Shown piece after piece: positions 8,341-64,000 of a DNA stretch of 64,000 bases. The stretch lies in assembly GCA_002269645.1 (NCBI GenBank), contig NIVC01002234.1:45702-109701 (forward strand), given 5' to 3'. The notes below the pieces were generated by a model. It made no database searches. It was not told where the DNA came from and saw nothing but the letters and a program-made list of their open reading frames with translations. Position 1 is the first letter of the stretch; the number at the start of each line of letters is the position of its first letter. Both the position numbers and the translations under genes were made by a program. This DNA is from Macrostomum lignano. Lineage: Eukaryota.

Positions 8341-8867
8341 GACTCGATTCACCAGCCAAAGCAACTCTAAATCACCCTCTAAAACGACTCAAACTCATTT
8401 AAAAATGACTCAAAAAGCGCCACAAAAATGACTCAAATCACCCCAAAGTGACAAAAAATCATAAAAGATATCAATAGAGCGTTGCTAATGACTCCAAAAT
8501 GAATAATATTTCTGGTTACCTAGGGACTAAAAATGTTTATATGGCGAAAGAGTTGGCAAACTTTGTCAGTTAGACTTTATAATGCAAACACGCTTAAAAT
8601 TATCAATGGAAAGGTGCAACGCCAATCCAATGGGTCTACATTCTTATCTCGCAAAGCTGATAACAATTTTTTTTTTAATTCAAAGGTCAAATAGAAATTT
8701 AACGATTCCTACCAAGAGGTGCCATAACTATCAATATTAGCATTAAAGGTGCCAAAATAAAATTGTTTGCTACATGTATATACGATCAATGGCCTTCGAT
8801 AACACTAGCGACGTAAATTATGCTTAGCACAAAATTTCGTTAATTTACAGTCAATTGCATGCTTTGT

Positions 8868-18700: not shown

Positions 18701-20831
18701 AAGAAGTCAATCCTGTTAGACAAGAAGTCAACCCTGTTAGACAAGAAGTCAATCCTGTTAGACAAGAAGTCGCCCTAGCCATAGGCGCACACGAAGCTAT
18801 TAGGTTAATTTATTCCGTAAGTCAACAACCCCAGGTAACGCAAAAATTGTCAAGGACCTGCATTATCATGTATTTACAAAGTGATTTAGTATGCAGAAAA
18901 TCTCAATTTACAGCCAATTTAACCCCGAGGTCCGGCGCCCGGCAACTCAATCGGAACAAGTGGCGCAGCACACGCGGTTGCAGCCGGTCAAAAAACTAAG
19001 AGCAGACAGGCAGACAGATATTCGGAGGCAGAACATTAGCTAAACTAAATATTGCTTCAGCAGCATGGGAGGGTAAACCAAGCACAGCAGTGAGACTAAA
19101 CAGAAAGAAGGAACTCTATGAAGACCCGGTGGGACTGCAAAAAAAGTCATCCAAAGGTATATTAGGTCTTCAATATTTTCTAGTTCTTTCAAGCACAGAG
19201 CCAAACGTCTGAGAGAGAGGGCATCAGCTTTGAGTCGAGTTTGTTTAACCAGCTGCTCGAGCCACTACAGCAAAACAAATACCACAAATACGAGTGTAGA
19301 GAGTCCAGCTCGGTTCCAGCACGCCAAAGAAGCAATTAAAATTGAACTCTAGGGAATTAAAACCCCAGTCTGATTGAAGTATACATAGAGAAACAACGTT
19401 GACTTTGAAAGCAAATCTCTGTGTAAACACGAATTTAAGAATGGTGTAGAATCTCGAATACTGGCCAGAAACTTAATAAAAGACAATTGACTTTTCACTC
19501 TGATTATTTAGCATCAATTATTATGGAAAAGTCACCGGGGTTATCAAGAATAGCTGCTTTAAGCCATGGCAGCTAGCAGTATGGTTGTTTTTTCAAGAAA
19601 TTGATAAATAATCAGGCCGAAAATAACGTTCGTCTCGGATGTCTTGGTGGTTGTCACCTTTAGATAGGGTGTCTAGAGATGCGCTCTAGATAGGATGTCT
19701 AGAGATGCACTATAGATAGGGTGTCTAGAGATGCACTATAGATAGGGTGTCTAGAGATGCGCTCTAGATAGGATGTCTAGAGATGCACTATAGATAGGGT
19801 GTCTAGAGATGCGCTGTAGATAGGGTGTCTAGAGATGCACTATAGATAGGGTGTCTAGAGATGCGCTCTAGATAGGGTGTCTAGAGATGCACTGTAGATA
19901 GGGTGTCTAGGGATGCGCTATAGATAGGGTGTCTAGAGATGCGCTATAGATTGGGTGTCTAGAGATGCGCTATAGATTGGGTGTCTAGAGATGCGCTATA
20001 GATAGGGTGTCTAGAGATGCGCTGTAGATAGGGTGTCTAGAGATGCGCTGTAGTAGTGTCTAGAGATGTGGTTATAGCTTAGTGGTTAGAGCGTCGGACT
20101 CACGACGGAAGGGTCGGGGGTTCGATCCCTGACCCAACCGGAATAATTGTGTCCTTGAGCAAGACACAGCTCTGCATTGCTTCAGTTCACCCAGCTGTAA
20201 AATGGGTGCCAGCATTAGCCTTCAGATGCGCCGCGCAATAGCTGCGGCTGAGCTGTCGGTTGCACATCTGCCCATTGGGGCAGGTGTAATCAATTATTAT
20301 TATTATTAATTTAGAGTCTTTAGAGTCTACATGTAAAGGTGTCCTAGAAGGGTATCTATAGATCTGCTAGGGTAATCTAGAGGTGTGCTGGGGTCTGTAT
20401 CAGTTTCAACATCTTCAGAGGCGTGCTCAAGTTCCTATAGAAGCATCAAGAAGCGCACCGGCCATCATGCCTACCTTCTCAATATAACCGGCCAACCGTT
20501 CGTTCAACTCCTGCATGTCTCTCTTCTCCTTCTCCCGTCCAGTCAGCATGCTGGACACGTCGGCAGCCACCGCGGCGCCGCTGCGACCTCCGCCGCCGCC
20601 AGAGAAGCTTCGACTAATGTTGACGCTGCGCATCGTCGAGGAGGCATCAAGAAGGTCTCGAGCCGCTGCAACGCCCGGCAAAGTCCTGTTGATCACCACA
20701 GTTTTGGGCGAAGCGATCGGACCGCGGAAGCCCAAAGAGCTCCCGCCGCTGGCGCCCGAAGTTTGCACGTTGTAGCGAGTGGTCTTCACGGTTGTCATGC
20801 TCTGGGCGTTGTTTGACGATGAAGTGCTCAT
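10552..20831 (-). CDS. Cytoplasmic intermediate filament protein (protostome type: long coil 1b plus lamin tail domain)
   Basis: Exons read by eye with GT-AG and consistent phases: 20831-20475, 14714-14503, 13928-13742, 13667-13572, 13246-12738, 12588-12491, [12377-12366 micro-exon], 12280-12156, 11814-11698, 10823-10707, 10596-10552. Rod motifs are ELNERLAGYIEKVRFLEAQN and LSLELEIHAYRKLLEGEE. LTD motifs are GNVSIQECSPDGKFVLLEN, DIGGWKL and WGVG. It ends TVYSAN* with no CaaX or obvious NLS, so it is not a lamin. The exon 3 acceptor (AAG at 13929-13931) is the least certain junction. Confidence 0.92.
11036..11510. repeat. 23-bp intronic minisatellite (GTAATTCCTCTAGATGGACTTGG)
   Basis: Tandem units in the IF intron, with degenerate flanks from about 10900. 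Confidence 0.9.
11876..12110. repeat. 55-bp intronic tandem repeat (~4 copies)
   Basis: GCTAAGAT recurs at 11893, 11948, 12003 and 12058. Confidence 0.88.
12690..12733. repeat. (AACT)n microsatellite adjacent to the IF exon 5 donor
   Basis: About 10 tandem AACT units. Confidence 0.85.
14045..14410. repeat. 46-bp intronic tandem repeat (GATTCCAGCTCTCTTATTGGTCAGGGAGCTTTTGGGGTGGTGGGTG)
   Basis: About 8 imperfect copies in IF intron 2. Confidence 0.88.
14812..18771. repeat. 20/21-bp minisatellite (CTGTTAGACAAGAAGTCAACC and variants), ~4 kb
   Basis: Continuous array in IF intron 1. The ORFs LTGLTSC/SNRVDFL are repeat translations. Confidence 0.96.
19661..20067. repeat. 26-bp minisatellite (TAGATAGGGTGTCTAGAGATGCGCTA)
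   Basis: Period of 26 (19687, 19713). It abuts the 5' end of a SINE. Confidence 0.9.
20068..20310 (+). mobile_element. tRNA-derived CORE-type SINE, copy 1 (internal deletion)
   Basis: A box TAGCTTAGTGG, B box GGTTCGATCCC, core TGTGTCCTTGAGCAAGACAC...CTGTAAAATGGG, and an (ATT)n tail. Homologous to the copies at 40364, 43112 and 47482. Confidence 0.85.
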
Positions 20832-25202: not shown

Positions 25203-27430
<2,228 letters not shown>

Positions 27431-38325: not shown

Positions 38326-39050
38326 TTAACCCTGATCCAAATCGTGATCCCCATCCTGATCCCCATCCTTATTCCCATCCTGATCCTCACCTGATCCCCA
38401 TCCTTATCCCCATCCGGATCTTCACCCTGATCCCAATCCTGGTCCCCATCCTGATCCCCATCCTGATCCCCATCCTGATCCCCATCCCGATCTCCATCCT
38501 GGTCCCCATCCTGATCCCCATCCCGATCTCCATCCTGGTCCCCATCCTGGTCCCCATCCGGATCCATCCTGATCCCCATCCTGATCGCCATCCTGATCCC
38601 CATCCTGATCCCATCCTGATCCCCATCCTGATCCCCATCCTGATCCCCATCCTGATCCCCATCCTGATCCCCATCCTGATCTCCATCCTGATTCCCATTC
38701 TGATCTCCATCCTGATCCCCATCCTGATCTCCATCCTGATTCCCATTCTGATTCCTACGCTGATCCCCATCCTGATCCCCATCCTGATCCCCATCCCGAT
38801 CTCCATCCTGGTCCCCATCCTGATCCCCATCCTAATCCCCATCCGGATCCCCATCCTGATCCCCATCCTGATCCCCATCCTGATCCCCATCCTGATCCCC
38901 ATCTTGATCCCCATCCTGATCCCCATCCTGATCCCCATCCTGATCCCCATCCTGATCCCCATCCTGATCCCCATCCTGATCCCCATCCTGATCCCCATCC
39001 TGATTCCCATTCTGATTCCTACGCTGATCCCCATACCTCCATTCTGATCC
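38326..39050 (+). repeat. (ATCCTGATCCCC)n 12-bp satellite, copy C
   Basis: Long homogeneous run. The IPIL/GIRM ORFs are repeat translations. Confidence 0.93.
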
Positions 39051-43111: not shown

Positions 43112-43416
43112 TAATTATAATAATAATTGATTACACCTGCCCCATTTGGGCAGATGTGCAACCGACAGCTCAGCCGCAGCTATTGAGCCGCGCATCTGAA
43201 GGCTGCGTACGGCTGTTCAGTCCAAGGACTGGGGGGTCGCCACACAGCCTCAATTACCCCAGCTAATGCTGGCACCCATTTTACAGCTGGGTGAACTGAA
43301 GCAATGCAGAGTTAAGTGTCTTGCTCAAGGACACAAATTGTTCCAGTGGGGTCGATAATCGAACCCCCGACCTTCAAGTCGTGAATCCGACGCTTTAACC
43401 ACTATACTACAACCCC
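43112..43416 (-). mobile_element. tRNA-derived CORE-type SINE, copy 3 (most complete)
   Basis: Minus strand: GGGGTTGTAGTATAGTGGTTAAAGCGTCGG...GGTTCGATT...TGTGTCCTTGAGCAAGACACTTAACTCTGCATTGCTTCAGTTCACCCAGCTGTAAAATGGG...GGGGCAGGTGTAATCAATTATTATT. Confidence 0.88.
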
Positions 43417-45796
43417 TACTAGGCTACAACCCCTATACCACAACCCCTACTAGGCTACAACCCCTACTAGGCTACAACCCTACTAGGCTACAACCCCTAC
43501 TAGGCTACAACCCCTACTAGGCTACAACCCCTACTAGGCTACAACCCCTATACCACAACCCCTACTAGGCTACAACCCCTACTAGGCTACAACCCTACTA
43601 GGCTACAACCCCTACTAGGCTACAACCCCTACTAGGCTACAACCCCTACTAGGCTACAACCCCTACTAGGCTACAACCCCTACTAGGCTACAACCCCTAC
43701 TAGGCTACAACCCCTACTAGGCTACAACCCCTACTAGGCTACAACCCCTACTAGGCTACAACCCCTACTAGGCTACAACCCCTACTAGGCTACAACCCCT
43801 ACTAGGCTACAACCCCTACTAGGCTACAACCCCTACTAGGCTACAACCCCTACTAGGCTACAACCCCTACTAGGCTACAACCCCTACTAGGCTACAACCC
43901 CTACTAGGCTACAACCCCTACTAGGCTACAACCCCTACTAGGCTACAACCCCTACTAGGCTACAACCCCTACTGGCTACAACCCCTACTAGGCTACAACC
44001 CCTACTAGGCTACAACCCCTACTAGGCTACAACCCCTACTAGGCTACAACCCCTACTAGGCTACAACCCCTACTGGGCTACAACCCCTACTAGGCTACAA
44101 CCCCTACTAGGCTACAACCCCTACTAGGCTACAACCCCTACTAGGCTACAACCCCTACTGGCTACAACCCCTACTAGGCTACAACCCCTACTAGGCTACA
44201 ACCCCTACTAGGCTACAACCCCTACTAGGCTACAACCCCTACTAGGCTACAACCCCTACTGGGCTACAACCCCTACTAGGCTACAACCCCTACTAGGCTA
44301 CAACCCCTACTAGGCTACAACCCCTACTAGGCTACAACCCCTACTAGGCTACAACCCCTACTGGGCTACAACCCCTACTAGGCTACAACCCCTACTAGGC
44401 TACAACCCCTACTAGGCTACAACCCCTACTAGGCTACAACCCCTACTAGGCTACAACCCCTACTGGCTACAACCCCTACTAGGCTACAACCCCTACTAGG
44501 CTACAACCCCTACTAGGCTACAACCCCTACTGGCTACAACCCCTACTAGGCTACAACCCCTACTAGGCTACAACCCCTACTAGGCTACAACCCCTACTAG
44601 GCTACAACCCCTACTAGGCTACAACCCCTACTAGGCTACAACCCCTACTAGGCTACAACCCCTACTAGGCTACAACCCCTACTAGGCTACAACCCCTACT
44701 AGGCTACAACCCCTACTAGGCTACAACCCCTACTAGGCTACAACCCCTACTAGGCTACAACCCCTACTAGGCTACAACCCCTACTAGGCTACAACCCCTA
44801 CTAGGCTACAACCCCTACTGGCTACAACCCCTACTAGGCTACAACCCCTACTAGGCTACAACCCCTACTAGGCTACAACCCCTACTAGGCTACAACCCCT
44901 ACTGGGCTACAACCCCTACTAGGCTACAACCCCTACTAGGCTACAACCCCTACTAGGCTACAACCCCTACTAGGCTACAACCCCTACTAGGCTACAACCC
45001 CTACTGGGCTACAACCCCTACTAGGCTACAACCCCTACTAGGCTACAACCCCTACTAGGCTACAACCCCTACTAGGCTACAACCCCTACTAGGCTACAAC
45101 CCCTACTGGCTACAACCCCTACTAGGCTACAACCCCTACTAGGCTACAACCCCTACTAGGCTACAACCCCTACTAGGCTACAACCCCTACTAGGCTACAA
45201 CCCCTACTAGGCTACAACCCCTACTAGGCTACAACCCCTACTAGGCTACAACCCCTACTAGGCTACAACCCCTACTGGGCTACAACCCCTACTAGGCTAC
45301 AACCCCTACTAGGCTACAACCCCTACTAGGCTACAACCCCTACTAGGCTACAACCCCTACTAGGCTACAACCCCTACTAGGCTACAACCCCTACTAGGCT
45401 ACAACCCCTACTAGGCTACAACCCCTACTAGGCTACAACCCCTACTGGCTACAACCCCTACTAGGCTACAACCCCTACTAGGCTACAACCCCTACTAGGC
45501 TACAACCCCTACTGGCTACAACCCCTACTAGGCTACAACCCCTACTAGGCTACAACCCCTACTAGGCTACAACCCCTACTAGGCTACAACCCCTACTAGG
45601 CTACAACCCCTACTAGGCTACAACCCCTACTGGCTACAACCCCTACTAGGCTACAACCCCTACTAGGCTACAACCCCTACTAGGCTACAACCCTACTGGC
45701 TACAACCCCTACTAGGCTACAACCCCTACTAGGCTACAACCCCTACTAGGCTACAACCCCTACTAGGCTACAACCCCTACTAGGCTACAACCCCTA
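43417..45796. repeat. 17-bp minisatellite (CAACCCCTACTAGGCTA), ~140 units
   Basis: Very homogeneous and contiguous with the 5' end of SINE copy 3. Confidence 0.96.
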
Positions 45797-47581: not shown

Positions 47582-49134
47582 ATGTTGCTAAATATAATAA
47601 ATGTTCAAGGATTTCAAGGGAAGGCTATGTATCATTGTAGTTTCTCTGTATGTAAAACTGTGATTGTCCCTTAGCATTCTGCCAGTGAGCAATGGGACCA
47701 GTCACCAATGCACAATATGCAAAACAATTGAGAAGCAGATTATTTGCTCACTGCATTACTGACTTGGAAAAGCTATACTTTGTGAGACCACGCGGTAACT
47801 TGATAGTTGCGATGGGAGAGACTGCACGGTTTCTGGATGAATTAGTAGTGTGGGTGTAGGTTGGGTGTAGAGAACATGGATGTAGTGATAAGCAGATGAA
47901 GAGTTCAGGCATCTATACATGTACAAGTATAGCGAGATGAATGGGCATTTTCACCGGCCAGAATAATGCGTGCCTGTGTGTGCGTCATTAGTGGACAATT
48001 ACGGCCGTCTAAATATAACTTGACGTTTTCACATTTGCTATACGAGCGTACTTGATAAATAAAACCATGTATTAATGCCAGAATGTGACCACTTGCACTG
48101 GTTAGCTATGCAAAGCGGCAAGAAGTTTTTATGTCACTAAATTCCATAAATGCGCGAATGCATGCACGCTAAGCCCGATATATTTCTTGTGTACAGTTAC
48201 AGTAACTTAGAAATTTCACGGTCCATGCGTCACACGCTGCATGGTAAAGATTTATTATGATATAATAAACTAAGCTAAAGATGGCACAAAGTCCAGTAAG
48301 ATCGGGGGCATTGTACACGTGGTTGGCCTTATAGGGTGAATCCAGCCAATCTGTAATACAAGTTAGTTCGCACGTTGCACACAGCGAGACAGCACACGGG
48401 GTGTGGTGGTGGCAGCACGAGAGTAGTGATTGTGGGGTGGCGTTCCCAGTTTGCCAACTGGTTTTTGATTTCGACTGTTTTTGCTTGTATTCGCCAGGCT
48501 GCCAACGCAACGTAACTATTTCATGCAATTTCCCACCTCTCTCCCTCCAGGTTTGGCAATCTCTTCGGCTGCGACTTGCGCGCACGCAGAGCGGAGACGG
48601 AGTCAGAGGAGAGGGTGAGAGTAAGGGGGAGAGAGGGGCGTTGAGTCACAATCGCGGCAAATAAATTTGGCCAAGCTCCGTTCCTAGGAGTCAGTGTGTG
48701 CGCGAGTGACTCCTCTCTCCAGTACGTATTTTAAGCCACAATCGTTATCGTTCGCTCTGATTTCTTCAATACATTGATCCGTGGTACTGCGACGGCTGCC
48801 TGCAGTCCCGCTAGCCAACACAAGCATACTGTGTGTCGCTGGGCCTGCACACACACACACACGCAGACGGATTATTGAAAGGCCGAGACAGTCAGCCAGA
48901 CAGAAAGGGAAGAAAGAGAACGAATCGGTTTAAGTCGCTGCTGCAGCTCGACCGTCTACCCACCCCTACCCCTACCCCGGTTGGCTCAGCGATCCGCTGG
49001 CCCAAGTCTACAGAGTCTAGTTATTAATCCCATTGCATTGAGCAACCTCTCTTATTATCCGCGCTTCGCTTCGACTGACTTCGACTCGACTCGAGAAGAT
49101 TTGACTTCTCCGACCGACCGACTGACCGAGAAAA

Positions 49135-50391
49135 ATGCTACATTCGAGCTATTTGCACTACGCCCAGTTGGCCGCGGCCCTCTTCGTGGTCGCCATGCTC
49201 GCTGTGCTGCTCACGGCCTACATCCTCGCCATCATTTGGGCTAGGGTGTACTTCTACCGGCGAGTTAACTTCAGTCCAGACATGCTGGAGGCTGGACTTC
49301 CAGGCGTTTCAATCATCAAACCGCTCGTTGGGATCGATCGGAATGTGTACGCAAATCTGGAGACCTTCTTCACGCTGCAGTACCCCAAATATGAGCTGCT
49401 GTTCTGCCTGGAGTCCGACTCCGACTCCGCCCGAATGGTGATAGAGACTCTCATGGAGAAGTACCCGGCTGTAGAGGCTCGACTGCTGTGCTCACCAATC
49501 TTGTGCGGCGTGAATCCGAAGATCAACAACATGATGCAAGGCTACCAGACTGCGAAGCATCAGCTGGTGCTTATCTCCGATAGCGGTGTCAAAATGCGAC
49601 CAGAGGCCCTCGCAGACATGGTTTGGTGCATCAACCAGAAGGACGTCGGCCTGGTGCATCAGATGCCATTTGTAGATCAACGACCGGGCTTCCGCAGTCT
49701 TGTACATTCCGCCTACTTTGGCTGCTCGCACGCCAAGTCCTATATTAGCGCCAACTGTTTAGGCATCACCTGCTGCACCGGGATGTCCTGCTTATTCCGC
49801 AGGCAGGTTGTGGACGAGCTTCCCGGCGGCCTGGCCTACTTCGGGCGCTACTTGGCCGAGGATTTCTTCTTAGCGCAGCACATCCAGTCAAGAGGCTACC
49901 GAGTGTCCGTGTCGCACTATCCGGCTCTACAGGATGGCACAGGCGAGGTGAGACTCCTGCAACGAAGATTGATTCGCTGGGCCCAGCTCCGCACCGCCAT
50001 GGTGCCGCACATCGTTCTACTGGAGCTCATCGCCGAGTGCTTAGCGGCCGGCCTGCTAGGCGCGTGGGCTCTGCCGTTCCTCTTCCCCAGCTTGAATCCC
50101 TGCGCCTGCTTCCTGATTCACTGCCTGACGTGGCTCCTAGCCGACTACGCCATGCTGCGCAGCTGCATGGACACCGCTGGCGTTGACGAGAAGCCGCAAT
50201 TCGGCCGCGTTGAATTCGTTTGCGCCTGGCTGCTCTGCGTCGGCATGACGCCGTTGAATCTGCTGGTCTCGCTTAGTCGCTCCGAGATTGTCTGGCGAAA
50301 TCGGCGCTTCCGGCTGAGCTGGGGCGGCGCCACCCACGAAGTGTCGTCGCAGCAGAAGTTGACTAACGCTAGCAGTAAACCGACGCTTTGA
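49135..50391 (+). CDS. UGCG: Ceramide glucosyltransferase (glucosylceramide synthase, GT21), intronless, 418 aa
   Basis: N-terminal TM segment, then GVSIIKPL, NPKINN, ISDSG, GLVHQMPF, TGMSCLFR, LAEDFF, an RxxRW motif (RLIRW), C-terminal hydrophobic segments and IVWR. Confidence 0.95.
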   Translation: MLHSSYLHYAQLAAALFVVAMLAVLLTAYILAIIWARVYFYRRVNFSPDMLEAGLPGVSIIKPLVGIDRNVYANLETFFTLQYPKYELLFCLESDSDSARMVIETLMEKYPAVEARLLCSPILCGVNPKINNMMQGYQTAKHQLVLISDSGVKMRPEALADMVWCINQKDVGLVHQMPFVDQRPGFRSLVHSAYFGCSHAKSYISANCLGITCCTGMSCLFRRQVVDELPGGLAYFGRYLAEDFFLAQHIQSRGYRVSVSHYPALQDGTGEVRLLQRRLIRWAQLRTAMVPHIVLLELIAECLAAGLLGAWALPFLFPSLNPCACFLIHCLTWLLADYAMLRSCMDTAGVDEKPQFGRVEFVCAWLLCVGMTPLNLLVSLSRSEIVWRNRRFRLSWGGATHEVSSQQKLTNASSKPTL

Positions 50392-52019
50392 TGATAGCTG
50401 CAAGTAAGCTATATTTTCCAAGGGAAAAGCAGGACACAGTAGCAGCACTCTTGGTCTCCCGGTGTTGAAATCGATTCAAACACTCCTTGAACCCCTAGCT
50501 GATGCGCATGACAATGTGGCATTTTGTTCTTCATTATTTCGTAGTTTGACCGTCTTAAATTGTTTTTTTTAAATCTTAATAGCCTTTATTCGGATAGGTT
50601 AGAATTGAATAACCAAGCAGATATACGAGCTAACTTTGGCTCAGTGCCAGTCAAATTTGGCCTCCACTGCGGCTGTGTCAGCACAATCTGTCCTCTCATT
50701 CATTCTATTTCAAAGCAGACTATTCACCAGTTTCCTCTAGCTAGACGTAAAATCCTTTGACGCGTCTTTTCTTCTATTAGCTGCTATTTTTATACGCTCG
50801 TTAAATCTGAAAGACCCCCATCTTGCCGGTTTGTTTAAAATTGTTGCGTAGCTCGTATCATAAATGTCATTTTTACCTACGAGTTCGCGTACCACCTGTC
50901 TCTTATGAACTGGCAGGGTAAGCCGGTATGCGCTGCATGTATACACTTTATTTGCACAATTAATTGTATTGCGCGACGCCCGCAGCTGCGTATATCTGCT
51001 CGAATTGCCCCCATGTTTCCTTCCAAAGTATTTCCTTCCAACATAGTCAGATTCAGTAATCTTCAGTACTTTATTACTGCTGCACCTGGTTTTAATTTGC
51101 ACGCCCTCTTGTAGCCCTTTGTTCTTGATTTGACATGCATTCTCCGAACTCAAGTGCTTGCCTGCTAATTGCCCTGACTTGTCTAGTCGCTGCAACAATA
51201 AAACTTATTAATGTATGCCCCAGCCAAAAGCTGGAAATCAGGTAGGCTTGTTCCTTTGCTTCCGTTTGCTTTATTTAAAGGAGCCTTATTAAACCTGTAA
51301 TTCGGACTTTTGAATGCTAAGAAACGGGCCTAGCTCAAAGAGAGTAAAAGAGACACAGAGAGATCTGGAACTCTGCTCGGGACCGTTCCGTTTGATTTGA
51401 ACACCGCTGTGCAAGCAGGGCTAGAGCTGGATTGGCATGAGTTCTTCGAAACAAGCGCTGCTGTAAGTCGCCCTAGCTGTCTCGTGTCTCCTGTCCAAAT
51501 ACCCCCATAGCTATCAGTTCAGCTCTTGTTTAACCAAGTGCGCACTTGAAGTATTTGGAAGGAAACTTTGCATTCGCTGCATATAAAAGCCTCTCGATTA
51601 GGTCTGTTTTGGGTAGTTCAATTCTGTGTGTGTGGGTGGGTGTGCAAATGCCTGAATTGGAATTCGCAGCGGATGAGAAAAAGTGAATATGGCTCATTTT
51701 TTTGGCAACGTTTTGTTCTGAATGCATACGCTCGTAAACGCAGTTATGTGCGCGAACCTGCGTTTAACTGGATTTTATCGCGCTACCAGGTACAGACAGT
51801 GAAATTCCGGGCGGAGGCAGCGCATTTGCAGTTCAAATATCACGTGTTTGCATTGTGGCAGCTAATTTAACAGGAATTATTCTGTAAAATTCAGGGTAGC
51901 TGCAGCAGCTGGGACATACTTGAAGTGTATTAATAAAGTACGTCGTACATGTAGTGCAGCTCTGCAAGATTGAAGGGAAAAATAGACGAGGGGTAGTAGA
52001 ATAGAACAGCAAATTAGGG

Positions 52020-53200
52020 TAGTGAAGCAGCAGATCAGGGTAGTAGAATAGTAGATAAAGGTAGTAGAACAGTCGATTAAGGTAGTAGAACTGTAGATCA
52101 GAGTAGTAGAACAGTAGATCAGGGTAGTAGAACAGCAGATCAGAGTAGTAGAACAGTAGATCAGGGTAGTAGAACAGCAGATCAGAGTAGTAGAACAGTA
52201 GATCAGGGTAGTAGAACTGTAGATCAGGGTAGTAGAACAGTAGATCAGGGTAGTAGAATAGTAGATCAGGGCAGTAGAACTGTAGATCAGAGTAGTAGAA
52301 CAGTAGATCAGAGTAGTAGAACAGTAGATCAGGGCATTAGAACAGTAGATCAGGGCAGTAGAACTGTAGATCAGAGTAGTAGAACAGTAGATCAGAGTAG
52401 TAGAACAGTAGATCAGGGCATTAGAACAGTAGATCAGGGTAGTAGAACAGCAGATCAGAGTAGTAGAACAGTAGATCAGGGTAGTAGAACTGTAGATCAG
52501 GGTAGTAGAACAGTAGATCAGGGTAGTAGAACAGTAGATCAGGGTAGTAGAACAGCAGATCAGAGTAGTAGAACAGTAGATCAGGGTAGTAGAACTGTAG
52601 ATCAGGGTAGTAGAACAGTAGATCAGGGTAGTAGAACTGTAGATCAGGGCAGTAGAACAGTGGATCAGGGCAGTAGAACTGTAGATCAGAGTAGTAGAAC
52701 AGTAGATCAGGGTAGTAGAACTGTAGATCAGGGTAGTAGAACAGTAGATCAGGGTAGTAGAACTGTAGATCAGGGCAGTAGAACAGTGGATCAGGGCAGT
52801 AGAACTGTAGATCAGAGTAGTAGAACAGTAGATCAGGGCAGTAGAACTGTAGATCAGAGTAGTAGAACAGTAGATCAGAGTAGTAGAACAGTAGATCAGG
52901 GCAGTAGAACAGTAGATCAGGGCAGTAGAACAGTAGATCAGGGCAATAGAACTGTAGATCAGAGTAGTAGAACAGTAGATCAGAGTAGTAGAACAGTAGA
53001 TCAGGGCATTAGAACAGTAGATCAGGGCAGTAGAACTGTAGATCAGAGTAGTAGAACTGTAGATCAGGGTAGTAGAACAGCAGATCAGGGTAGTAGAACA
53101 ATAGACTAGTGTAGTAGAACAGCAGATTTGGGTAGTAGAACAGCAGATTTGGGTAGTAGAACAGCAGATTTTGGTAGTAGAACAGCAGATTTGGGTAGTA
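52020..53200. repeat. 21-bp minisatellite (AGTAGAACAGTAGATCAGGGT)
   Basis: Lies between the 3' ends of two convergent genes. The SRTVDQG ORF is a repeat translation. Confidence 0.93.
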
Positions 53201-53455
53201 GAGCAATACAGAGCACAAAAAACGATTAAATCACTGATGACTCATAGACCCAAAGACCAATTAAAGTGATGAAACTTTATCGACCTTCATTACAAGCTTT
53301 GAAATCGACTTTTATTTCGGAAATTTTATTTAACCAACAAATCCGCTTGAGTGCATATTTGTGTCACAATTGAAAATTGAATCAGAAGCATTAAATTCAT
53401 AATCAAATCAGTATTCTAGTGTAAAAAGTACAAACTGCAACTTCAATGGTGAGCA

Positions 53456-56400
53456 TCAGGTGCTTGGCTTTCCGCTGCCACTGAAGAAGCTCAGCTGAAA
53501 TACGAGAGGGCGGTTGTTGCAGTAGCAAAGTACGTTAACTGGAGCTCAGAGTGCTGCCTCACTCACCACTGTGTCGCTCAGTGCGTTGAAGCTCGATCGC
53601 CGCGATGGGGAAGTCTCTTCCAGGACCCGTTCCTAGAATTGCATTGTTTACGATATGATAAATAAGAAAACTATTAGTAGATGACAAAATATACCTGATA
53701 AGAGCGTTGAGCGATTGAGCAATTATTATTATTAATAATACTAGCGATCGATGGGGCGTAGCAGGGAGGAAGCAAAGGGGGACCGCGGCCCCCAAAAAGC
53801 TAGTAGGAACATTGGCGCCACTTTGCCCCCCCCCTGGTGCTGGTGCCCCTGATGCTGGCGCCCCTGGTGCTAAAGCCCCTGGTGCTAAAGCCCCTGGTGC
53901 TAAAGCCCCTGGTGCTAAAGCCCCTGGTGCTAAAGCCTTTGGTGCTAAAGCCCCTGGTGCTAAAGCCTCTGGTGCTAAAGCCCCTGGTGCTAAAGCCTCT
54001 GGTGCTAAAGCCCCTGGTGCTAAAGCCCCTGGTGCTAAAGCCTTTGGTGCTAAAGCCCCTGGTGCTAAAGCCCCTGGTGCTAAAGCCTTTGGTGCTAAAG
54101 CCCCTGGTGCTAAAGCCCCTGGTGCTAAAGCCCCTGGTGCTAAAGCCCCTGGTGCTAAAGCCCCTGGTGCTAAAGCCCCTGGTACTAAAGCCCCTGGTGC
54201 TAAAGCCCCTGGTGCTAAAGCCCCTGGTGCTAAAGCCCCTGGTACAAAAGCCCCTGGTGCTAAAGCTCTCAAAATCCTGTCTTGGCCCCTGTTGCCGTCC
54301 TAACAAAACGATTCACAATGGCAAAATATTAAGAGATTTTTTATCCATTACTATTAGTAGACTTAAAGCGAAACTGACTCCGATATTATTAAAAATTGGA
54401 ATTGTCGTCTCAGTAACTTGTGAGTTACACGGTAAACGCATCAGTACAATCTATTCAGTGTGTTGTAAACTATCATTAATCATTAATAATTAATAAAATA
54501 AAAATTACTGGATAATCGCTGGAAGTTGAAACGTTGTCTTTAGCGGCTAAGATTTTAGACGGAGTGCAGACTCTGAGAGAAAAACTTCTTTAAGACCAAA
54601 AAGCATTGAAACGACTGACTCAAATTTGCACTTTTTACCAACTGAGGTCCAACAAAATAAAACGCCTCTGCCTTTTCGGCTTTTGCAAATTTAGCTAATC
54701 TAATTAATGTCCTTTCCTCGGCAAGACCATCAAAGAGTCGAGGTTCCTTTCATGCCGCCAGACAAATCTTATCTAGAAGTGTACAGTTAGGCTTTTTTAA
54801 TTAGATTGACCTCGAACTAAGGAGCAGGATTTTCTTATGCCGCAAAAAGTCAAATAAAGTATTTGTTTTGCCAAATATTTTGGTCTGGGCTTAGGAAACA
54901 GAATGTTTTTGCAGACTGTGGCTAACTTTTAATTCGATTGAAAATCATTAGGATTCAGAAATATGAGTACATGTACGAGTTTATCAAGCTGTCACTTGTC
55001 AATTAAAATCAGTTTTAATCGATTTGTAAACTTTTTTTCTCATTTTTATGGCTCGTAAAACTAAAATTCTTTAAAACAAAGCAAACAACGGGTGTCTACT
55101 CCACGACAGGGTGTCTACTCTAAGACCAGGGTGTCTACTCTAAGACCAGGGTGTCTACTCCAAGACCAGGGTGTCTACTCCAAGACCAGGGTGTCTACTC
55201 TAAGACCAGGGTGTCTACTCCAAGACCAGGGTGTCTACTCTAAGACCAGGGTGTCTACTCCAAGACCAGGGTGTCTACTCCAAGGCAGATATAACTACTT
55301 CAAGACTTGAGGTGTCTGCTTGAAGAAAAATGCATTGACTTAAAAGACAAATATATGTAATCTACGAAAGGTACAGCACACCTTTATCGAGAGTGTTTTA
55401 CGCTACAGGAATTCATTAGAACCAATGAATTGGTTCATCAGCACCCTGTGATGATGCTTCCAGACAGTTGATAGAATGCCACTTTAAACACTGGCCTAAT
55501 CGTCACAAAAGAAAAACCCTGCAACGCCTCACCGTCAGCGGATTTTGGCCGGACGGCCGTCTACTGGACGGCTTTGAGCCGGGCGGCGTCGGTGTCGGGA
55601 TTCGGCAATAGTCAGCCGCTGTCAGGTTTGACGCCATCAAGGCGTGCGCGCTGCCGCCAGTAGCACCGCTGCTGCCCATGCCGGCGCTGCCCATGACATT
55701 CGCGGCGCTGTTCGCTGCAACGCTATGCCGTCTGGTCTGCTGCAGGGCTGTTGGCAGCGACAGAGTGAAACTTCGGTTGGCATCCTCCTGGGGAAACGGA
55801 TTTTTTGGTGGCAAGGGCAGGCGATGAACTCCAATTTGGGAGGGACTCAGTTGTTCAAAAGTTGTTCAACAGTGCAAGCGAGCGCGAGAGAAAAAAAGAG
55901 AAATGGGCTGGAAACAATGCGCGACAAACGACGGCTTAATTTCATCCAGTCAGCCTAAATCCTGTCTGTCAGTATCTAAAGTTGCTGTCTAAAAAAACAA
56001 TCAAAATCGCTCTTTTTTGAAGAGAAACCGAGGAATTGCAACGGACGTTTTCGTTACCTGTTAGCCTATCAGCTTACTCATAAGCTTTGCAACATTGCAA
56101 AATTGAGATTTAAAAAATGCAATACTTAGTCTGAGTCACTCTTAAAGACTTGCGCAAACAATTTGTTACATTGAACGTACACAAGAGGAAATGTTCAAGG
56201 CGATTGGGATGCGTGTACTTCTGTGTCAAAGCGGTCTTTTTCGTGCTTTTAGCTGCTTGTTTTAAAGCGATTGTCATGCTTCAATCCAAGGTTCGGAATC
56301 AGAATTTGAAACCTAACCAGAGCTTGGACGATCCAAAGAAGAAGTGCCACGCGAGACAATGGTTACAGTTACAAACATTTAGCAAAATGCAGCTGAATGC

Positions 56401-59400
56401 GGTGCGAGCAATGCGTTTGTTAATTTTTAGGCGGCCTACATCGTATGACGGAGACTGATGCTGCGAATTGTGAGTCAGAGAACTGACTCCTGTGTGCCAG
56501 TTGTGATGCACCTGGTGAAATTGGTGGTTCTGATGGGGTACAGGAGACAAATACAGAGCCGTATGCGTGTTGATCGGTGGTGCTGGAGCTGCTTCTGAGG
56601 ATATCGTCGAGAACTCGCCGCCGCCACTACCGCTGGCTCCGCCGATGATGACAGGCACGGAGAGCGAGTGCTGCGGCGGCAGGAAGCAGCGGCGCCGACG
56701 TCTGTTGCTGCTGCTGCCGCTGCTGGACATTGACGACTGTTGTTGGTGGTGCGGCGACATCGGCGCCGATGTGGTCGACAGCGGAGAGGCCGGACTCGGC
56801 GGAGCAAGGGAGTTGGCGGTCGAATGGGCACTTCGGGGCGGCGGTTGCTAAAAAAATCAATGCGCATGGCGTGGGTGGCGAAATATGGGCCGGGACAGAA
56901 GCTATTTAGCAATAACATGATTATATTTAGCGAATTTTCCTTGCTAAACTAAACGAAATAATGTTAGAAGGCATCACAAAGACAAAACCCCCCGTCAACA
57001 GACACTGCTGCTGAAAGACAAACATTGGCTCGCTAATTAAATGTGTACAGATTCTTATTTAATTAAAGCCAGCCGTGAATAAATCAAGCAGCCGGAGACT
57101 CAGTAAACTGAGATCCGTCACGAAAAGCCAATTTTGGTCAAACGGATGCGAAAAAAAATTGCAAAGTAAATTCTAGCTGACTTAGCAAATTCTCCAATTT
57201 CAAATTTCGCACGTCGCCTCACCCACACAATTGCTGCTCTAAGGACCGTTGCCATTGACAACCCGGGCACGCATTTGATTAAAAGGGATGGAGGTAGAAG
57301 TCAGTCTACAACAGGTGGGAGACTGAATTCAGTTTAATTCAAGGCACACAAAAGAGCAAGAACTGGGCTGGCTACGCGAGTTATGGGGGCAACTTACGGC
57401 TCAGTTGTTTAGTCACGGCCGGGGCCCAATCGAAAAATATTGATTTCGGGCCTCATGCATTCAAATTCTGGGCGTCTTTTTTGTATTGGCATTAAAAAAC
57501 TCAACAATTACCGTGTGATAGAGGGCCTAGGCTACGGTAAAACAATGAGAATCTCATCGAGTCCTCAGCTTACCATGACGTTGTTTTGCGTGGAAATCAC
57601 AGAGACAAAAAACTGGCATCGCTAAATGAGCAACAGAGAAAATGAAACAATGGGCCTCCATCTGGCTCCACAATTGCAAGCTGGTTCGAATAGAGAAAAT
57701 AAAACGGAAAAGCCTTTCAGCTAAGTAAAAAATAATTTCCTTTGTTCTCTTTAAGACGAGACAATATAGAAGACGTTATAATCATACATTTTTTTAATCA
57801 AGCCAGTATTTTAACTTCTAACAAAAATCTGAAAAAAATTTTTCTAAGAGTAGCCTTGGGTGCTTGATTCTTCGAAATTAATTGTAATTCTACGAGTATT
57901 AATGGGGTCGTGCTATAAAGCTGTCGTAGCGTAAGTTGAATCGTACGTCGGAACTTTTACACTGCGGAGATAGGGGCTAAGAACGATCTTATCTTACAAT
58001 GGCTTTGTACTCGTAGAACGGGGCCAGTACTAACTTTAGTCACTTGATGCTTTGAAGTAAAAAAAGTATTAAAAAACTATTGAAGATTCGTATTTTCCTT
58101 TGTAGCTCAGTTAGTTTTTAATGGGCTTTGGACTAATTAAGGCGATATTCGACTCCAGTAAGCAGTCATGCCCCTGAGCACGCAAACGCACACAGGTACG
58201 TCAGGCAGACACACACTCACACATGGCATGCACACCCCACCCACTGTGCCTCGGTGTCTGGCGCAGAATCGCAAGACAGGCCCAATATCTGGGTACTTAT
58301 TTAGGATGGAACCTGTAGCTTTAATTGGATACGAGCGATTTCTTTAGCAGAAGATGCCAGAGCCTTATACAGTCGCATACGATAGGCCAGAACTTACCGC
58401 GGAGAGGCCCGCCGCGCCGCTGATGTCAATGACGGAGCCCTTCCTGGGACTGGTGCGCAAATTGAACGACGGACTGCTGCCAGTCTTGCTGATGCGTCGC
58501 ACAAATTCCTGACCTGCGTGGTGATGAGACGATAGGGCGGCTCGAATGAATTCTTCAATCTGAAACATAATGCGCGCAGGCGAATGTATCGCGGGTAGGG
58601 ATCACAAAGCAGGATTTAGAGGCGGTCGAAGCCGGGTCTTATTAGATCAAATCTACGGGACAAAGGAGCTCACGTTTCAAGCACGTAGAATTTTTGTAAT
58701 AATGCAGCTAGCTAATTGAACACATCCGTTTGGAACGTGTCTCAGTGTCTGATTTCATTAATATTGAGATTTTGTCCATCTTGTCCACGATAGACTAACC
58801 TACGGCTTATTCCCGAACTTTGAAATGTCTTAAACTAGCTTGAATCGTGGCACTTCAAAATACGAGCGCAGGTCCTTCGATTATTCTTTTATGGTCGTCT
58901 TGTCATAATACGAGTATCTTGATTATTCACTTGCATCGACTTCAGACCCATTTAATCTGAGTTCTTTATTCTACGCATGGCTATGATTCCCTCCTTTTGT
59001 ATTTAACTGTCCAGACGTAAAGCTTTTGGCTACTTTTGATCGATTTTGTCGTTCCATTAATGAGTGCATGCGTCCCTAGTTCTGATCCCATTGGTTCATT
59101 GCATTGGCAGTGACATGGGCTCAGAGTCCTTGCTGTGGATTTAGCCAATGAGTTTTAGTCGGCAGGGAGGTACATATGAACGAGGTGCCCATCGGAAATA
59201 GAAGACTGCTTGCATCATTTGCCAGTTTCAACTAGTTTATCAGGAAGTTGCAAAGATCTGCAAATCTGCTTGGAGAGATTCAGTGAATAGGGAACAAAAC
59301 TCGTAGCAATGAGGCCTGCTCTGATAGTGGTACTGCTTGCCATGTGCGCTCTCTGTTTCGAGATTGGATCGGCTCGTGGTGCGGCTTCTACTGCTTCACT

Positions 59401-62400
59401 CGATGACAGCGAGACGGCCCATTCAAAGAGGTTTGTCCAACCCGGAACCTACGACTGGAAGAAGCGCTTTGTCCAACCCGGAACCTACGACTGGAAGAAG
59501 CGCTTTGTCCAACCTGGAACCTACGACTGGAAGAAGCGCTTTGTCCAACCCGGAACCTACGACTGGAAGAAGCGCTTTGTCCAACCCGGAACCTACGACT
59601 GGAAGAAGCGCTTTGTCCAACCTGGAACCTACGACTGGAAGAAGCGCTTTGTCCAACCTGGAACCTACGACTGGAAGAAGCGCTTTGTCCAACCTGGAAC
59701 CTACGACTGGAAGAAGCGCTTTGTCCAACCTGGAACCTACGACTGGAAGAAGCGCAACGAAGAATGAATAGAGAACAACAATAGCCCGAGCTACAAAGAT
59801 ACATTTTGAAGTAACCACTCACTGGCCAGTTCCCTATTTTCCTAATAGTTGTTAATGTCGTGCAAGCCTGTAAATTGCATGCGAGCCACTCTGTTGGCTG
59901 AATAATCTAATTAAACTCAGCATCCGTAGTCGATCCAAACTTCTGCAAATCAACTGTTGAGTGCGCATATAAACTTTATTATTGGTGTTGCAGTCAATCA
60001 TCGCCGAAATCATTTTCTAAGCTGCTATTGTACCGCTTAGAGTAATTAGTAGGCTAACCTTAAATGTTAATCGTACAAGGTAATGTAGTAGATTGGATTC
60101 AAGCAGAGAGAGCCACAAGAGAAGAGCGGCTCTGTAACGCTCCATAAAAAGTCCGATGCCAAGCATTGATTTTTCTAGTGAAGACCTTCTCCTACAGCTC
60201 TCAACAGGCTGGGGGGAGGCTGGATACGGAGGCCATTCAATCGACTCAAGTAGCCCCGCATCGTGTTGCCACTTTTTGTCTTCAACTCAGCCTTTGCAGC
60301 CATAAGCGACTCTATCAGACATGGAGTGGCTGCGGCTCCGGCAAATCGCTTGCCTTCTACTTCTCTACCGTTGGTTGCATTCTTAACCTAACGATTTCTC
60401 ACTTCTTTGACAGGTGTTTTTGAGCCTATAAATCCACCTGATCGAAGTTCAGAATGTTGAACGCGTGCTAAACGATGACGGATTAGTTCGGGAGTATTAT
60501 TGAGTATAAAGGAGTTTGTTCGCCATGATACTGTGCACTGTAATGATGTTAATAATTAATTTCTCCGAGTACTAATTTCTCCGCCTATGACAAACTATGG
60601 AAATGCCTAATGTCACTTAAACTCCTATGCTGGTTACGAATTTGACTTGGACCTTTGGGCAATTAGGATTTTGTCAATCTAACCCGGCTATGATGAATTG
60701 TCCTGACTAACAAGGGAACAACTTTAAGGCCTCAGAGCAACTTGAACGCGAACAAATTTGATGAAGTAAGCTAAAATGCGCGGGCACCCTTGCGACACAA
60801 TCTAAATTGGCTATCCAGGCGTGGTCTGGAAGGACACGGACTAATACATGCAGTTAATCTATTCTAACAAAGCACACAGAGACAGCTCCTCTACTCAAAA
60901 GACATTTTGGCCTGTAATTGACAGCTTCGACCTGCATGCAATGCTTACAGTAACTCTTTCTAGTTAAGCACAAAAGGAGTCTGAGTTTTGTCTGGCATTA
61001 CTTTGACTCAGTAGGTTGAGCACTAAAGAAGGGAATGGGGTATGAGCACAAAGCGAAAAATATTTTCAGTCTGAAGGTCTCGATAAGGCCAGCGGCACGA
61101 ACACGCACACAAAGGGGCATGCACAGTAAGCTGACGGCTACACAGCAATGCGGTAACACTACTATAAGTACGACTTATATGCATGAGAGAGTTCATTTTG
61201 CCTTTTAATGAAACAGAACAAAAGTATACAACAATTAGAAACTATTTGGCTTACTTTACCACTTTCTTTAGATTCCGTCTTTACCAATAACACAGCCTAG
61301 ACTTAGAACATAGATTTTTGCAGATTTTCCATTTTAGATAGATTTTAGTTTGTCCTTAAACTTACGACTAGCATTGGCCATCGTGACATATACATTATTA
61401 CTACTGAACAATGCATTTGGGAGTTCTAGCTACTAGCACAATGACTTCGTGTCCGCTCGACCTCCTGCTTCACCGCTACATTGACTTGTCTCTACCAGAG
61501 TATTCGAAGGAAAAGCGATTCTCACAACAGCAAAACAAACAAACAAACAATAAAAATCTATAAAAAGTTCAGGACCAGAGCTGGCCGACACCCCAGAAGA
61601 TGGAGATGCGGCGTCATTGCCAAGACGGCTGGGACTGGCGCTGCCGTGGCTGGTGCGCCTGATAACTGTCACGCTGTCGCAAGAAGTCTGCCTGGTGAGC
61701 GACACGCGCCTGGTTGCCGAGTCTCTGTATCGCGATATGGCATTAGAAATGTGCGACGTCTTGCTGGCCTCCAATAGCCGAGAGATTGCCTCAACCCGCT
61801 TGTTCGGCGGGACGCTGGACAAGTCTGGGGTGTAAAAATTTTTGGATAGCAAAGAAACATTCGCAGCGTGTTGGATTTTTTTTACTGAGCAGCGGCGGCT
61901 TTGCGGTTTCCGTCTTCGACGCAGCAATCGGCAGTCATTAATTGAGCCACATTTAGAAAAATATGGAATATGGAATATTCTCTATTCACGATAGTTTAGA
62001 TGCCTCGCTAAACATACCGCATCATCAAGTAATTTTTGACTGTTTTACAGTTTTCAACTAAACATCGAAAGTAATAAAATTTTTATCTGTTTTTAACAGA
62101 CCCGTAAAGTGCATTTTCGCTCAAAACCTGTTTCAAAACTGTTCTCTAAGACACCAAGTTACCCGTCTTTCTACGAAGTCATCATTTGGTCGTAAATATA
62201 TTCAATCGACAATAATAAAATAAGATTTCATTCTCATAAACTAATGCTGTTCGTTCTCGACTTCAGCACTATGGCCACGAATGCTCCCGCCCAAGTTTGT
62301 TCTTCCATAACTGACGAAGAGTTTTATAGAAAAGTCCTCTCTCATTCATGAATAAACGATTGATACCTCGTTATTATCCAACGCACCCCACATTCCCCTT

Positions 62401-64000
62401 CTCTCTCTCTCCCCCCATCAGCTTCATCTGACTGTCAATATTGCCCTCCCGCCCAGCCCAGCCTCGAGCTACATAGCCAGCACAAGATGCTTATCAAATT
62501 TCATCGGCTGAATGACTGCAAGCAACCTACAGGCATTTCTCCTTGCAATAAGGCGTCTCCTAAAAAGAAGATGGAAGGCTAAACGAATCTGTCACGTATT
62601 ATTTACTCGCTAAAGTGGCTTAAACTGCATTTTCTGAAGCGCGAAGCGATGTAGTAGCAATTAGCTAACAAATGCATAGTCAGAAAGGCAGCTGCAGTTA
62701 AATATGTCCATGGACAGAGGAACAGCCAGTCAGGCAGTCAGGCAGTCAGGCAGTCAGTCAGTCATGAGTAACCATGAACTGGAGCTGAGCCTCTGGTAGC
62801 TATGGGTGGCGATTGGCCAAAGCTGGTGATGAAATAAAGAATATGCAAGCAAGTGCAAGTCCAGACCTACAGAGTAAGCAGGTTTCTACACAGAGTGTCT
62901 CCAAGAGTCCAGACAACACGGTCGCTTTGACAACCTCGAAATTACAAATTATAAAATAGAAATTGTTGGTCACTTTCACCTGCTCGACGCTTAAAACTTC
63001 GTAAGCTTGAGATTCATAAACCCCCTGCTCAGACAAATGTGCGACATTAGCAACAGATAAAGCTGAGTCATCCAAAAAAGTTGTATTATTTTTGCTTAAA
63101 AACAAAACGTAACATGGTCTGCGATATCACAAAGCACTAAGAACCTCCCTCGTGCGCGCCAGACAGCAAAACAAAGAATCCTCAATATACCTCGTAGAAC
63201 AAGCCGATCGCAGTTGGTTTCTCTATGATAATGTTTTCTATACTGCGAACTATTACGAACTTGGAACGGAGCGGATGCGCAAGGCAGGAAACGCAATCCA
63301 TTGAAAGCGCGCTCTCCACTAAAAAAGGACCATTTTTGGGCATAGCAGAGCTGGCGCATCTATCTATATAAGCATCTTGATAATAATAGATAACTGAAAA
63401 AGGCACAAAAGAATAATTAATATGTGTTCCGGTTCCGGCGCGACAATAAAGTGGTTGGACAGTACGATGGCATCATGGAATAGTTTTGCCAAGAGACTCT
63501 GCATCACAATCAACTCTTCAGCTTTATAACGGTAACATCTGCACACACAAGCGCACCAATACTGCAGTACGCAGACACGCCACTCGCACACACCCGAGTG
63601 TACAGGGTGTACAGGGGTCCTGACATTCCAATCGTCAGGCATGTACACTTCTGTGCCTGGGTTGGGCCCTGATGGGGTCGTGTGGCGCGAGAGCCTGACG
63701 CCTTCATCGCTGAGCTGCTCCACTGAGCTGAACTTACCCGGACTGGACTTCACACTGGCCGCTGCCTCGTTGATTTTCTTCATCTTCTCCTTCCGCTGCA
63801 GACCGGAGGAGCTGCGCCGCCTGTGCTGGAACTTGTCGTCGTCGTCGTCGTCGTTGCCGTCATTGTGGTGGACGTTCCTGTCGTGAGCGCCGGCGCAGCG
63901 GCAACTGCCGGCTATGGACATCAGGCTGAACTCTTGGTCGATGCTGGGCTGCTGCATCGTGATGAGCGGCGGCCTGCTGGGTCGCTGGACGAATGTTGAG
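53456..64000 (-). CDS. 3' portion of an unidentified multi-exon gene (Ser/Pro-rich, low-complexity C-terminal region), 5'-incomplete
   Basis: Phase-consistent exons: >=64000-63594, 61824-~61592 (donor uncertain), 58559-58398, 56847-56512 (or 56488), 55787-55533, 53632-53567, 53494-53456 (LSFFSGSGKPST*). Strong GTAAGT/GTGAGG/GTGAGT donors, and AATAAA on - at about 53311-53330. The frame is open to the window edge. Confidence 0.68.
53855..54266. repeat. 15-bp minisatellite (GCCCCTGGTGCTAAA)
   Basis: Intronic in the minus-strand gene. The PGAKA/KPLVL ORFs are repeat translations. Confidence 0.92.
55090..55285. repeat. 20-bp minisatellite (GGGTGTCTACTCCAAGACCA)
   Basis: About 9-10 units (55109, 55129, 55149...). 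Confidence 0.9.
59309..59767 (+). CDS. Neuropeptide precursor: signal peptide plus 9 x FVQPGTYDW flanked by KR/KKR
   Basis: GCA ATG A start, hydrophobic leader MRPALIVVLLAMCALCFEIGSA, acidic spacer, nine 36-nt units separated by basic convertase sites, and C-terminal NEE*. Confidence 0.92.
   Translation: MRPALIVVLLAMCALCFEIGSARGAASTASLDDSETAHSKRFVQPGTYDWKKRFVQPGTYDWKKRFVQPGTYDWKKRFVQPGTYDWKKRFVQPGTYDWKKRFVQPGTYDWKKRFVQPGTYDWKKRFVQPGTYDWKKRFVQPGTYDWKKRNEE

Follow-up and report, generated by a model that had tools for sequence, protein, structure and literature searches.

Prohormones are matured by removal of the signal peptide, cleavage by a convertase after KR or KKR, and trimming of the basic residues by a carboxypeptidase E-type enzyme. 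Multi-copy peptide precursors specific to one lineage turn up routinely in each newly surveyed invertebrate clade. The planarian pedal-peptide-like genes Smed-ppp-1 and Smed-ppp-2 (Collins et al. 2010, PMC2953531) encode a signal peptide, a short spacer, and evenly spaced non-amidated copies, with 5 to 8 peptides of 11 to 12 residues lying between KR or KRR sites and no Gly (PMC2953531). The non-amidated, KR-flanked peptides of ppp-1, ppp-2, and spp-16 have been seen by mass spectrometry, and they are lower after RNA interference (RNAi) of pc2 (PMC2953531). A gene with a similar layout was found in a stretch of 64,000 nucleotides (nt) of the flatworm Macrostomum lignano (GenBank assembly GCA_002269645.1, contig NIVC01002234.1, positions 45,702 to 109,701 of the forward strand), the whole of which is called the window below. 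At window positions 59309 to 59767, a predicted signal peptide and a spacer are followed by nine identical copies of the peptide FVQPGTYDW, every one of them set between basic residues.

The gene is probably of the preprohormone type, its product being cut by a PC2-type prohormone convertase and trimmed to nine non-amidated FVQPGTYDW peptides that signal outside the cell, with peptidergic neurons as the most likely source. The evidence for this reading comes from the anatomy of the precursor, from an old paralogue that keeps the same peptide core amid diverged signal peptide, spacer, and flanks, and from transcript-derived gene models at the locus.

Structure of the precursor gene

The features of the gene and its downstream flank are as follows.

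59309..59767, plus strand: precursor coding sequence, complete in a single exon, 152 amino acids plus stop (open reading frame list)
59309..59374, plus strand: predicted signal peptide MRPALIVVLLAMCALCFEIGSA, with probable cleavage after G-S-A (hydropathy profile)
59375..59431, plus strand: acidic spacer RGAASTASLDDSETAHS, then the first KR cleavage site (translation)
59432..59755, plus strand: nine 36-nt units, each encoding FVQPGTYDW and a KKR linker (Tandem Repeats Finder, unit-by-unit listing)
59756..59767, plus strand: C-terminal tail NEE and TGA stop (translation)
59910..59915, plus strand: ATTAAA, candidate polyadenylation signal, 143 nt past the stop (pattern scan)

An earlier note on this DNA, made from the letters without database searches, had described a signal peptide followed by nine FVQPGTYDW-KKR units of 36 nt whose Pro codons have C,C,T,C,C,T,T,T,T as their successive third bases, and Tandem Repeats Finder, the unit listing, and the hydropathy profile showed this description to be exact. 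The array at 59432-59755 has a period of 36, 9.0 copies, and 98% matches. The sequence FVQPGTYDWKKR is encoded by all of the units (9/9), the sole variable nucleotide being position 3 of the Pro codon, where the change is silent. With HSKR before copy 1 and KKR after each of the nine copies, basic sites bound every copy. No Gly precedes the basic residues in any of the window units, so there is no amidation signal and FVQPGTYDW would be left non-amidated, a point of the earlier note that was borne out by translation of all nine units.

The N terminus of the protein consists of MR, a 15-residue hydrophobic core, and then the small residues G-S-A, as is typical of a signal peptide; the maximum of the 9-residue Kyte-Doolittle mean is 3.3, compared with 3.06 in the paralogue L002 described below. 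The signal peptide was assessed by eye and by hydropathy. The ATG of the precursor is the first one after an in-frame TAG 7 codons upstream, and its context, GCAATGA, has a purine at -3. Downstream, a pattern scan found no AATAAA within 530 nt. Upstream, a CCAAT box at 59145, inverted CCAAT boxes at 59090 and 59103, and a TACATATG element at 59171 lie 130 to 220 nt before the ATG; by pattern match, these elements may constitute a core promoter.

Two Pfam matches in the precursor were rejected. The match to EZH2_WD-Binding (38 bits, cutoff 25) adds up nine chance matches of 9 residues, no single stretch of which passes, and the match to NOPS (34 bits, cutoff 27) is a whole-protein sum of nine chance repeat matches, with no single domain passing. 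Such summed scores are a trap for automatic annotation, and the product of a near-identical copy of the gene (L004, below) is already tagged with a "faint" EZH2_WD-Binding domain.

Paralogues and constraint on the peptide core

An old paralogue, L002 (contig NIVC01004175.1, gene Mlig001773.g8; L002:10001-10402), encodes eight copies of FSAPGTYDW, each followed by [KR]K[RK], and ends in the tail SME, which is analogous to the NEE tail of the window gene. The L002 signal peptide, MRLLGTLGTVLVLIGLAAA, is equivalent to that of the window protein though barely alignable with it, and the L002 spacer is not conserved, yet it too ends in KR directly before the first copy. In both genes, therefore, KR stands before the first copy and KKR or KKK after the last, so that each copy appears meant to be excised. 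The same layout of basic sites around the copies is found in L002 and in L001, a close copy of the window gene described in the next section.

A third subtype, FSAPQAFDW, is present in at least five copies with [KR]KR linkers in an entry of the older M. lignano annotation (P0003, UniProt A0A1I8HD77), a truncated fragment that starts with KR-F. Automatic naming has labelled this entry and its sister M. lignano entry, P0029, "Coat protein" and "Phosphofurin acidic cluster sorting protein 2," labels that are unsupported by sequence. The family motif is F-[VSA]-[QA]-[PA]-[GQH]-[TA]-[YF]-D-W, always between basic sites, and the units are homogenised within each gene: those of the window gene are all V-Q, and those of L002 are all S-A.

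The earlier note had taken the silent-only variation among the window units as a sign of selection on the peptide. The window array by itself speaks weakly to this point, because the 27-nt core allows 81 single-base changes, of which 16 are synonymous, and one silent variable site is thus not significant alone (p about 0.2). Selection is nevertheless supported by L002, in which the 27-nt core has four variable sites (five changes), all of them synonymous against an expected fraction of 0.22 (p about 5e-4 to 2e-3), and in which the linkers change only by K/R exchange. Furthermore, a window unit and an L002 unit differ at 11 of 36 nt, seven of the differences falling in codons 1 to 3, while the PGTYDW codons show one difference, which is silent. 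The flanks of the two genes have no detectable DNA similarity and the signal peptides and spacers can barely be aligned, so that conservation is confined to PGTYDW and the basic linkers. These comparisons support a constraint at the protein level on the peptide core and the cleavage sites, the L002 paralogue being the decisive evidence. The comparison of the window with L001 is uninformative about selection and was set aside, since the identity of 95-99% extends to the noncoding DNA.

The contrast that had been drawn between the window array and the neighbouring minisatellites was not upheld, since neither identity nor a stop-free frame sets the array apart. The neighbouring noncoding arrays have 92-97% matches, and several are stop-free throughout; an open frame across the window repeat is therefore no evidence of coding. 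The features that do not fit a noncoding minisatellite are the unique signal and spacer upstream of the array and the silent-only variation among units of a diverged paralogue.

Relatives were sought with a family profile (HMMER without a word index) among 1.84 billion representative proteins, which stand for about 15 billion, and none was found outside M. lignano; the family thus appears to be small and, so far, private to the M. lignano lineage. The other profile matches inspected (P0008 to P0028) were rejected as low-complexity repeat proteins, Q/G/Y-rich and others, without basic sites flanking the repeats. A single metagenome "relative" from the family-profile scan was also rejected, being a bacterial lipoprotein-like open reading frame with one chance GTYDWKK.

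Transcription, genomic copies, and deposited gene models

RNA-seq was the sole source of the GenBank annotation of the assembly, which combines StringTie/TACO transcript assemblies with mapped de novo transcripts and divides them at trans-splice and poly(A) sites (PMC5730564). Gene models cover the locus in the window, its copies, and the L002 paralogue (BOX15_Mlig017890g1/g3, Mlig030851g1, and Mlig001773g8), and because they come from this purely transcript-derived annotation, the gene is transcribed. The earlier note had made the existence of the gene depend on a transcript over the open reading frame, and the models at the same locus supply one indirectly: the window gene is real and transcribed. 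In a search of 5.8 billion protein clusters, only two matches were obtained, both "hypothetical" Macrostomum lignano proteins. The gene is thus already deposited as a hypothetical protein and is not new as a gene.

The locus L003 (NIVC01001021.1, BOX15_Mlig017890g1, PAA73271.1; L003:3001-3458) is identical to the window open reading frame at every base, Pro-codon order included, save for one C absent from the CCC run in unit 4 of L003; given this base-for-base identity, the window represents the L003 locus in a corrected assembly. The GenBank "hypothetical protein" BOX15_Mlig017890g1 is shortened to four units. L001 (Mlig017890.g3; L001:10001-10423) has eight units, the first of which reads FAQAGTYDW, and is collinear with window positions 48371-64000 at 95-99% identity, noncoding DNA included, so that the window and L001 are alleles or recent duplicates; 180 Mb of the M. 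lignano genome lies in duplicated blocks of at least 95% identity (PMC5730564). L004 (Mlig030851.g1; L004:818-1289) is another near-identical copy, with two indels.

Differences among these copies bear on the turnover of the units. The difference in copy number, 9 against 8, and the arrangement of the window Pro codons as (C,C,T)(C,C,T),T,T,T suggest turnover by unequal exchange, and the repeated (C,C,T) pattern suggests that a 108-bp block of three units was duplicated within the window array. In L001, a diverged first unit is followed by the pattern T,T,T,T,T,C,T, and there is one unit fewer than in the window; this difference indicates that unequal exchange is ongoing between or within copies.

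The family proteins deposited for GCA_002269645.1 have 92, 92, 145, and 85 amino acids, and all four models are wrong; the genomic open reading frames truly hold 8 to 9 units. The 92-, 92-, and 85-residue models skip 144, 179, and 144 nt, respectively, which amounts to four units in the first and third and to five units less the missing base in the second, and the 145-residue Mlig030851.g1 model is garbled by the two indels of L004. The gaps in the three shorter models are not real introns but what is expected from the mapping of a repeat-collapsed short-read transcript. In the L003 model, the 179-nt gap brings the reading frame back, and the RNA therefore had an intact frame; since a single C was lost from a CCC run and the skip restores the frame, the L003 frameshift points to an assembly error and not to a pseudogene. 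The public models of the family thus have skipped units, frameshifts from assembly errors in two copies, and misleading names, and the window shows the correct nine-copy structure.

Proposed processing and function

Four general features of a multi-copy prohormone are present in the window gene: a predicted signal peptide, basic sites bounding the copies, conservation confined to the peptide and those sites, and transcription. In the proposed pathway, the signal peptide would route the 152-residue protein into the secretory pathway, a PC2-type prohormone convertase would cleave after HSKR and after each KKR in secretory granules, and a carboxypeptidase E-type enzyme would trim the basic residues. 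The products released would be nine identical free-acid FVQPGTYDW peptides, an acidic spacer peptide, and the tripeptide NEE. FVQPGTYDW would act extracellularly, most likely from peptidergic neurons, on a putative receptor. The copy number (8 to 9) and the silent-site pattern would change by unequal exchange, a process that would also drive the surrounding minisatellites. The nervous system of M. lignano expresses a PC2 homologue (RNA815_2403.2), and juveniles do not survive its RNAi (PMC4490696); in addition, the single-nucleus atlas of the species includes pc2+/7b2+ peptidergic neurons (PMC11398382). The calculated [M+H]+ values are 1112.505 for FVQPGTYDW, 1043.447 for FSAPGTYDW, 1058.458 for FAQAGTYDW, and about 1068.479 for FSAPQAFDW.

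Several points weigh against this reading. The neuronal or endocrine expression, the cleavage, and the bioactivity of the products of the window gene are inferred, and the signal peptide is a prediction made by eye and from hydropathy. The window array is young and homogenised, and its near-identity is no better than that of the neighbouring noncoding arrays. The depth of conservation is that of paralogues within one genome, because no orthologue was found outside M. lignano. Finally, the deposited transcripts hold only four units, so that the nine-unit mRNA is a prediction.

The same precursor chemistry could also yield an exocrine product of prostate, cement, pharyngeal, or epidermal gland cells, such as a pheromone, an allohormone, or a seminal-fluid or defensive peptide, released outside the body or into the mate. 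Sequence cannot tell the cargo of neuronal dense-core granules from that of gland cells, and the family is lineage-private and fast evolving outside the core, as is common for reproductive and exocrine products; moreover, the prostate and cement glands of M. lignano are well developed and form separate cell families in the single-nucleus atlas (PMC11398382). This origin is nonetheless considered unlikely, given that, in animals, short peptides set at even intervals between dibasic or tribasic sites overwhelmingly come from neurons or endocrine cells and that the nearest architectural matches in flatworms, ppp-1, ppp-2, and spp-16, are PC2-dependent prohormones. As for a defensive role, FVQPGTYDW is small and has a net charge of -1, unlike cationic antimicrobial peptides.

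It is far less probable that the protein is a secreted repeat protein that stays uncleaved, its 12-residue repeat being structural or adhesive, as in the decapeptide repeats of mussel foot proteins, and its basic triplets being part of the material. Pro, Gly, Thr, Tyr, and Lys are all present in the repeat, M. lignano makes adhesive secretions, and the window is rich in expanding minisatellites able to create proteins of this sort. However, the protein is tiny, with 130 residues after removal of the signal, and it has KR right before the first unit, despite a spacer that is not conserved, and a basic triplet after the last. Across the paralogues, the triplet varies only between K and R and positions 2 and 3 of the peptide are free, a pattern that fits excised peptides.

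That there is no functional gene at all, but a 36-bp minisatellite that happens to continue the frame of a fortuitous ATG and hydrophobic stretch, the model being a spurious product of pervasive transcription, is scarcely credible: many of the neighbouring arrays are stop-free and give long mechanical open reading frames, the single variable site of the window array carries almost no information on selection, and 2 of the 4 near-identical copies in the older assembly are frameshifted, but an independent paralogue with other codons, another signal peptide, and unrelated flanks encodes the PGTYDW core with silent-only unit variation, a third subtype (FSAPQAFDW) exists, and the frameshift in L003 is one C lost from a CCC run, mended by the 179-nt skip of the transcript model.

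Surroundings of the gene

The peptide gene lies downstream of a region of extraordinary minisatellite density. More than 15 arrays, with units of 11 to 55 bp and up to 191 copies, lie within window positions 1-55300; examples are 14812-18771, 43407-45796, 6385-8461, 52002-53202, and 38331-39034. Several of the arrays are fully stop-free, which results in long mechanical open reading frames that are not genes. Three other open reading frames in the window contain recognised domains.

49135-50391, plus strand: intronless 418-residue Glyco_transf_21 open reading frame, likely a ceramide glucosyltransferase (E 6e-46)
12734-13309, minus strand: exon-sized open reading frame with an intermediate-filament rod domain, PF00038 (E 5e-22)
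26331-26810, minus strand: exon-sized open reading frame with a Ras/Rho-family GTPase domain, PF00071 (E 5e-27)

The Glyco_transf_21 open reading frame precedes the peptide gene by about 9-10 kb, and this synteny is kept in L001. Those at 12734-13309 and 26331-26810 are parts of neighbouring multi-exon genes. Scans of the window for tRNAs and Rfam families gave no matches.

Implications

Little has been described of the neuropeptidome of M. lignano, a worm that serves as a transgenic model in work on regeneration, stem cells, and sexual conflict. If the preprohormone reading is confirmed, an uncharacterised peptide family with three subtypes will join the signalling repertoire of the species, and concrete masses and gene identifiers are now available for peptidomics, in situ hybridisation, RNAi, and receptor deorphanisation. 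A broader proposal, judged slightly less likely than not, is that the peptides constitute a signalling system invented within the Macrostomorpha, with three ligand subtypes (FVQPGTYDW, FSAPGTYDW, and FSAPQAFDW), a dedicated and possibly flatworm-specific receptor, and no counterpart among the bilaterian neuropeptide families. Such a system, if real, would offer a tractable case of a peptide-receptor pair that arose de novo and then expanded, in a model worm that regenerates and is open to transgenesis, with the copy number tuned by minisatellite-like slippage.

Comparison with known peptide families

The earlier note could not place FVQPGTYDW in a recognised family, and this part of its claim stands: no named match was found among the 51 prohormones of Schmidtea mediterranea, the 30 npp families of one cestode, or the results of the protein searches. 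Its suggestion of novelty holds less well for the gene itself, which was in GenBank beforehand as a hypothetical protein. When the 51 S. mediterranea prohormones and their Schistosoma relatives were scanned for motifs, no YDW, FDW, DW[KR][KR], or PGT turned up in a comparable context, nothing similar was present in the 30 npp families of the cestode (Koziol 2016 numbering; PMC11196405), and neither the peptide strings nor the gene identifiers occurred in the literature searched. Novelty at the level of the family is likely, though not certain, the comparison not having extended to the McVeigh 2009 and Koziol 2016 catalogues themselves.

Among the flatworm systems, Smed-ppp-1 and Smed-ppp-2 share the precursor layout of the window gene, but their peptides, x-Y-[YF]-D-[PK]-I-G-x-x-L-L, are unrelated in sequence to the F-x-x-P-G-T-Y-D-W of the family. 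The core of the pedal peptides and orcokinins (aromatic-D-x-I-G ... L-L, 11 to 15 residues) is absent from the window peptide, which has no D-x-I-G. Smed-spp-15, Smed-spp-16, and cestode npp-26 (FDPI[QM][FY] / YFDPI[RL]F) encode short aromatic peptides in multiple copies, as the window gene does; the spp-16 and npp-26 peptides are partly non-amidated, whereas the spp-15 peptide is amidated, unlike that of the window, and the F-D-P-I core of all three lacks the C-terminal Trp of the window peptide. Besides npp-26, the cestode peptides that come nearest in style are npp-29 (MLYW) and npp-37 (WTDF) of Taenia crassiceps (PMC11196405). Both are short, aromatic, and non-amidated and lie between KR sites, and the C-terminal Trp of npp-29 is free, but they are single-copy tetrapeptides whose likeness to the window peptide amounts to one or two residues at most.

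A C-terminal Trp in multi-copy precursors is also known from the Wamide/MIP group (Smed csp-1 and npp-5, e.g., SAWRDMPWamide) and from RGWamide/APGWamide, and the latter peptides share in addition a Pro/Arg-Gly ... Trp element. These peptides, however, are amidated, a Gly preceding their basic site, and the MIPs are of the form W-x6-W; the window peptide has no Gly before KKR and a single Trp. Neither AKH/RPCH (F-S-P-G-W-amide), nor the CCK/sulfakinin-like peptides with their Tyr-Asp context (and possible Tyr sulfation), nor Aplysia FCAP, with its free Trp end, is known to have a matching precursor layout or amidation state.

LWDY and AWDF of the Acoelomorpha and ASWLDF of a nemertean are lineage-restricted, multi-copy, and evenly spaced, are named without an amide, and have been confirmed by mass spectrometry (Thiel et al. 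2018, PMC6188537; Thiel et al. 2021 preprint). Their residues run Trp-Asp-aromatic, whereas those of the window peptide run aromatic-Asp-Trp, and the phyla differ; nothing points to homology, and the three are the closest analogues in kind. Lineage-specific multi-copy precursors are to be expected in every clade, and the view of how neuropeptides work is unchanged by the present family. Its precursor belongs to this well-known general kind and does not represent a new one.

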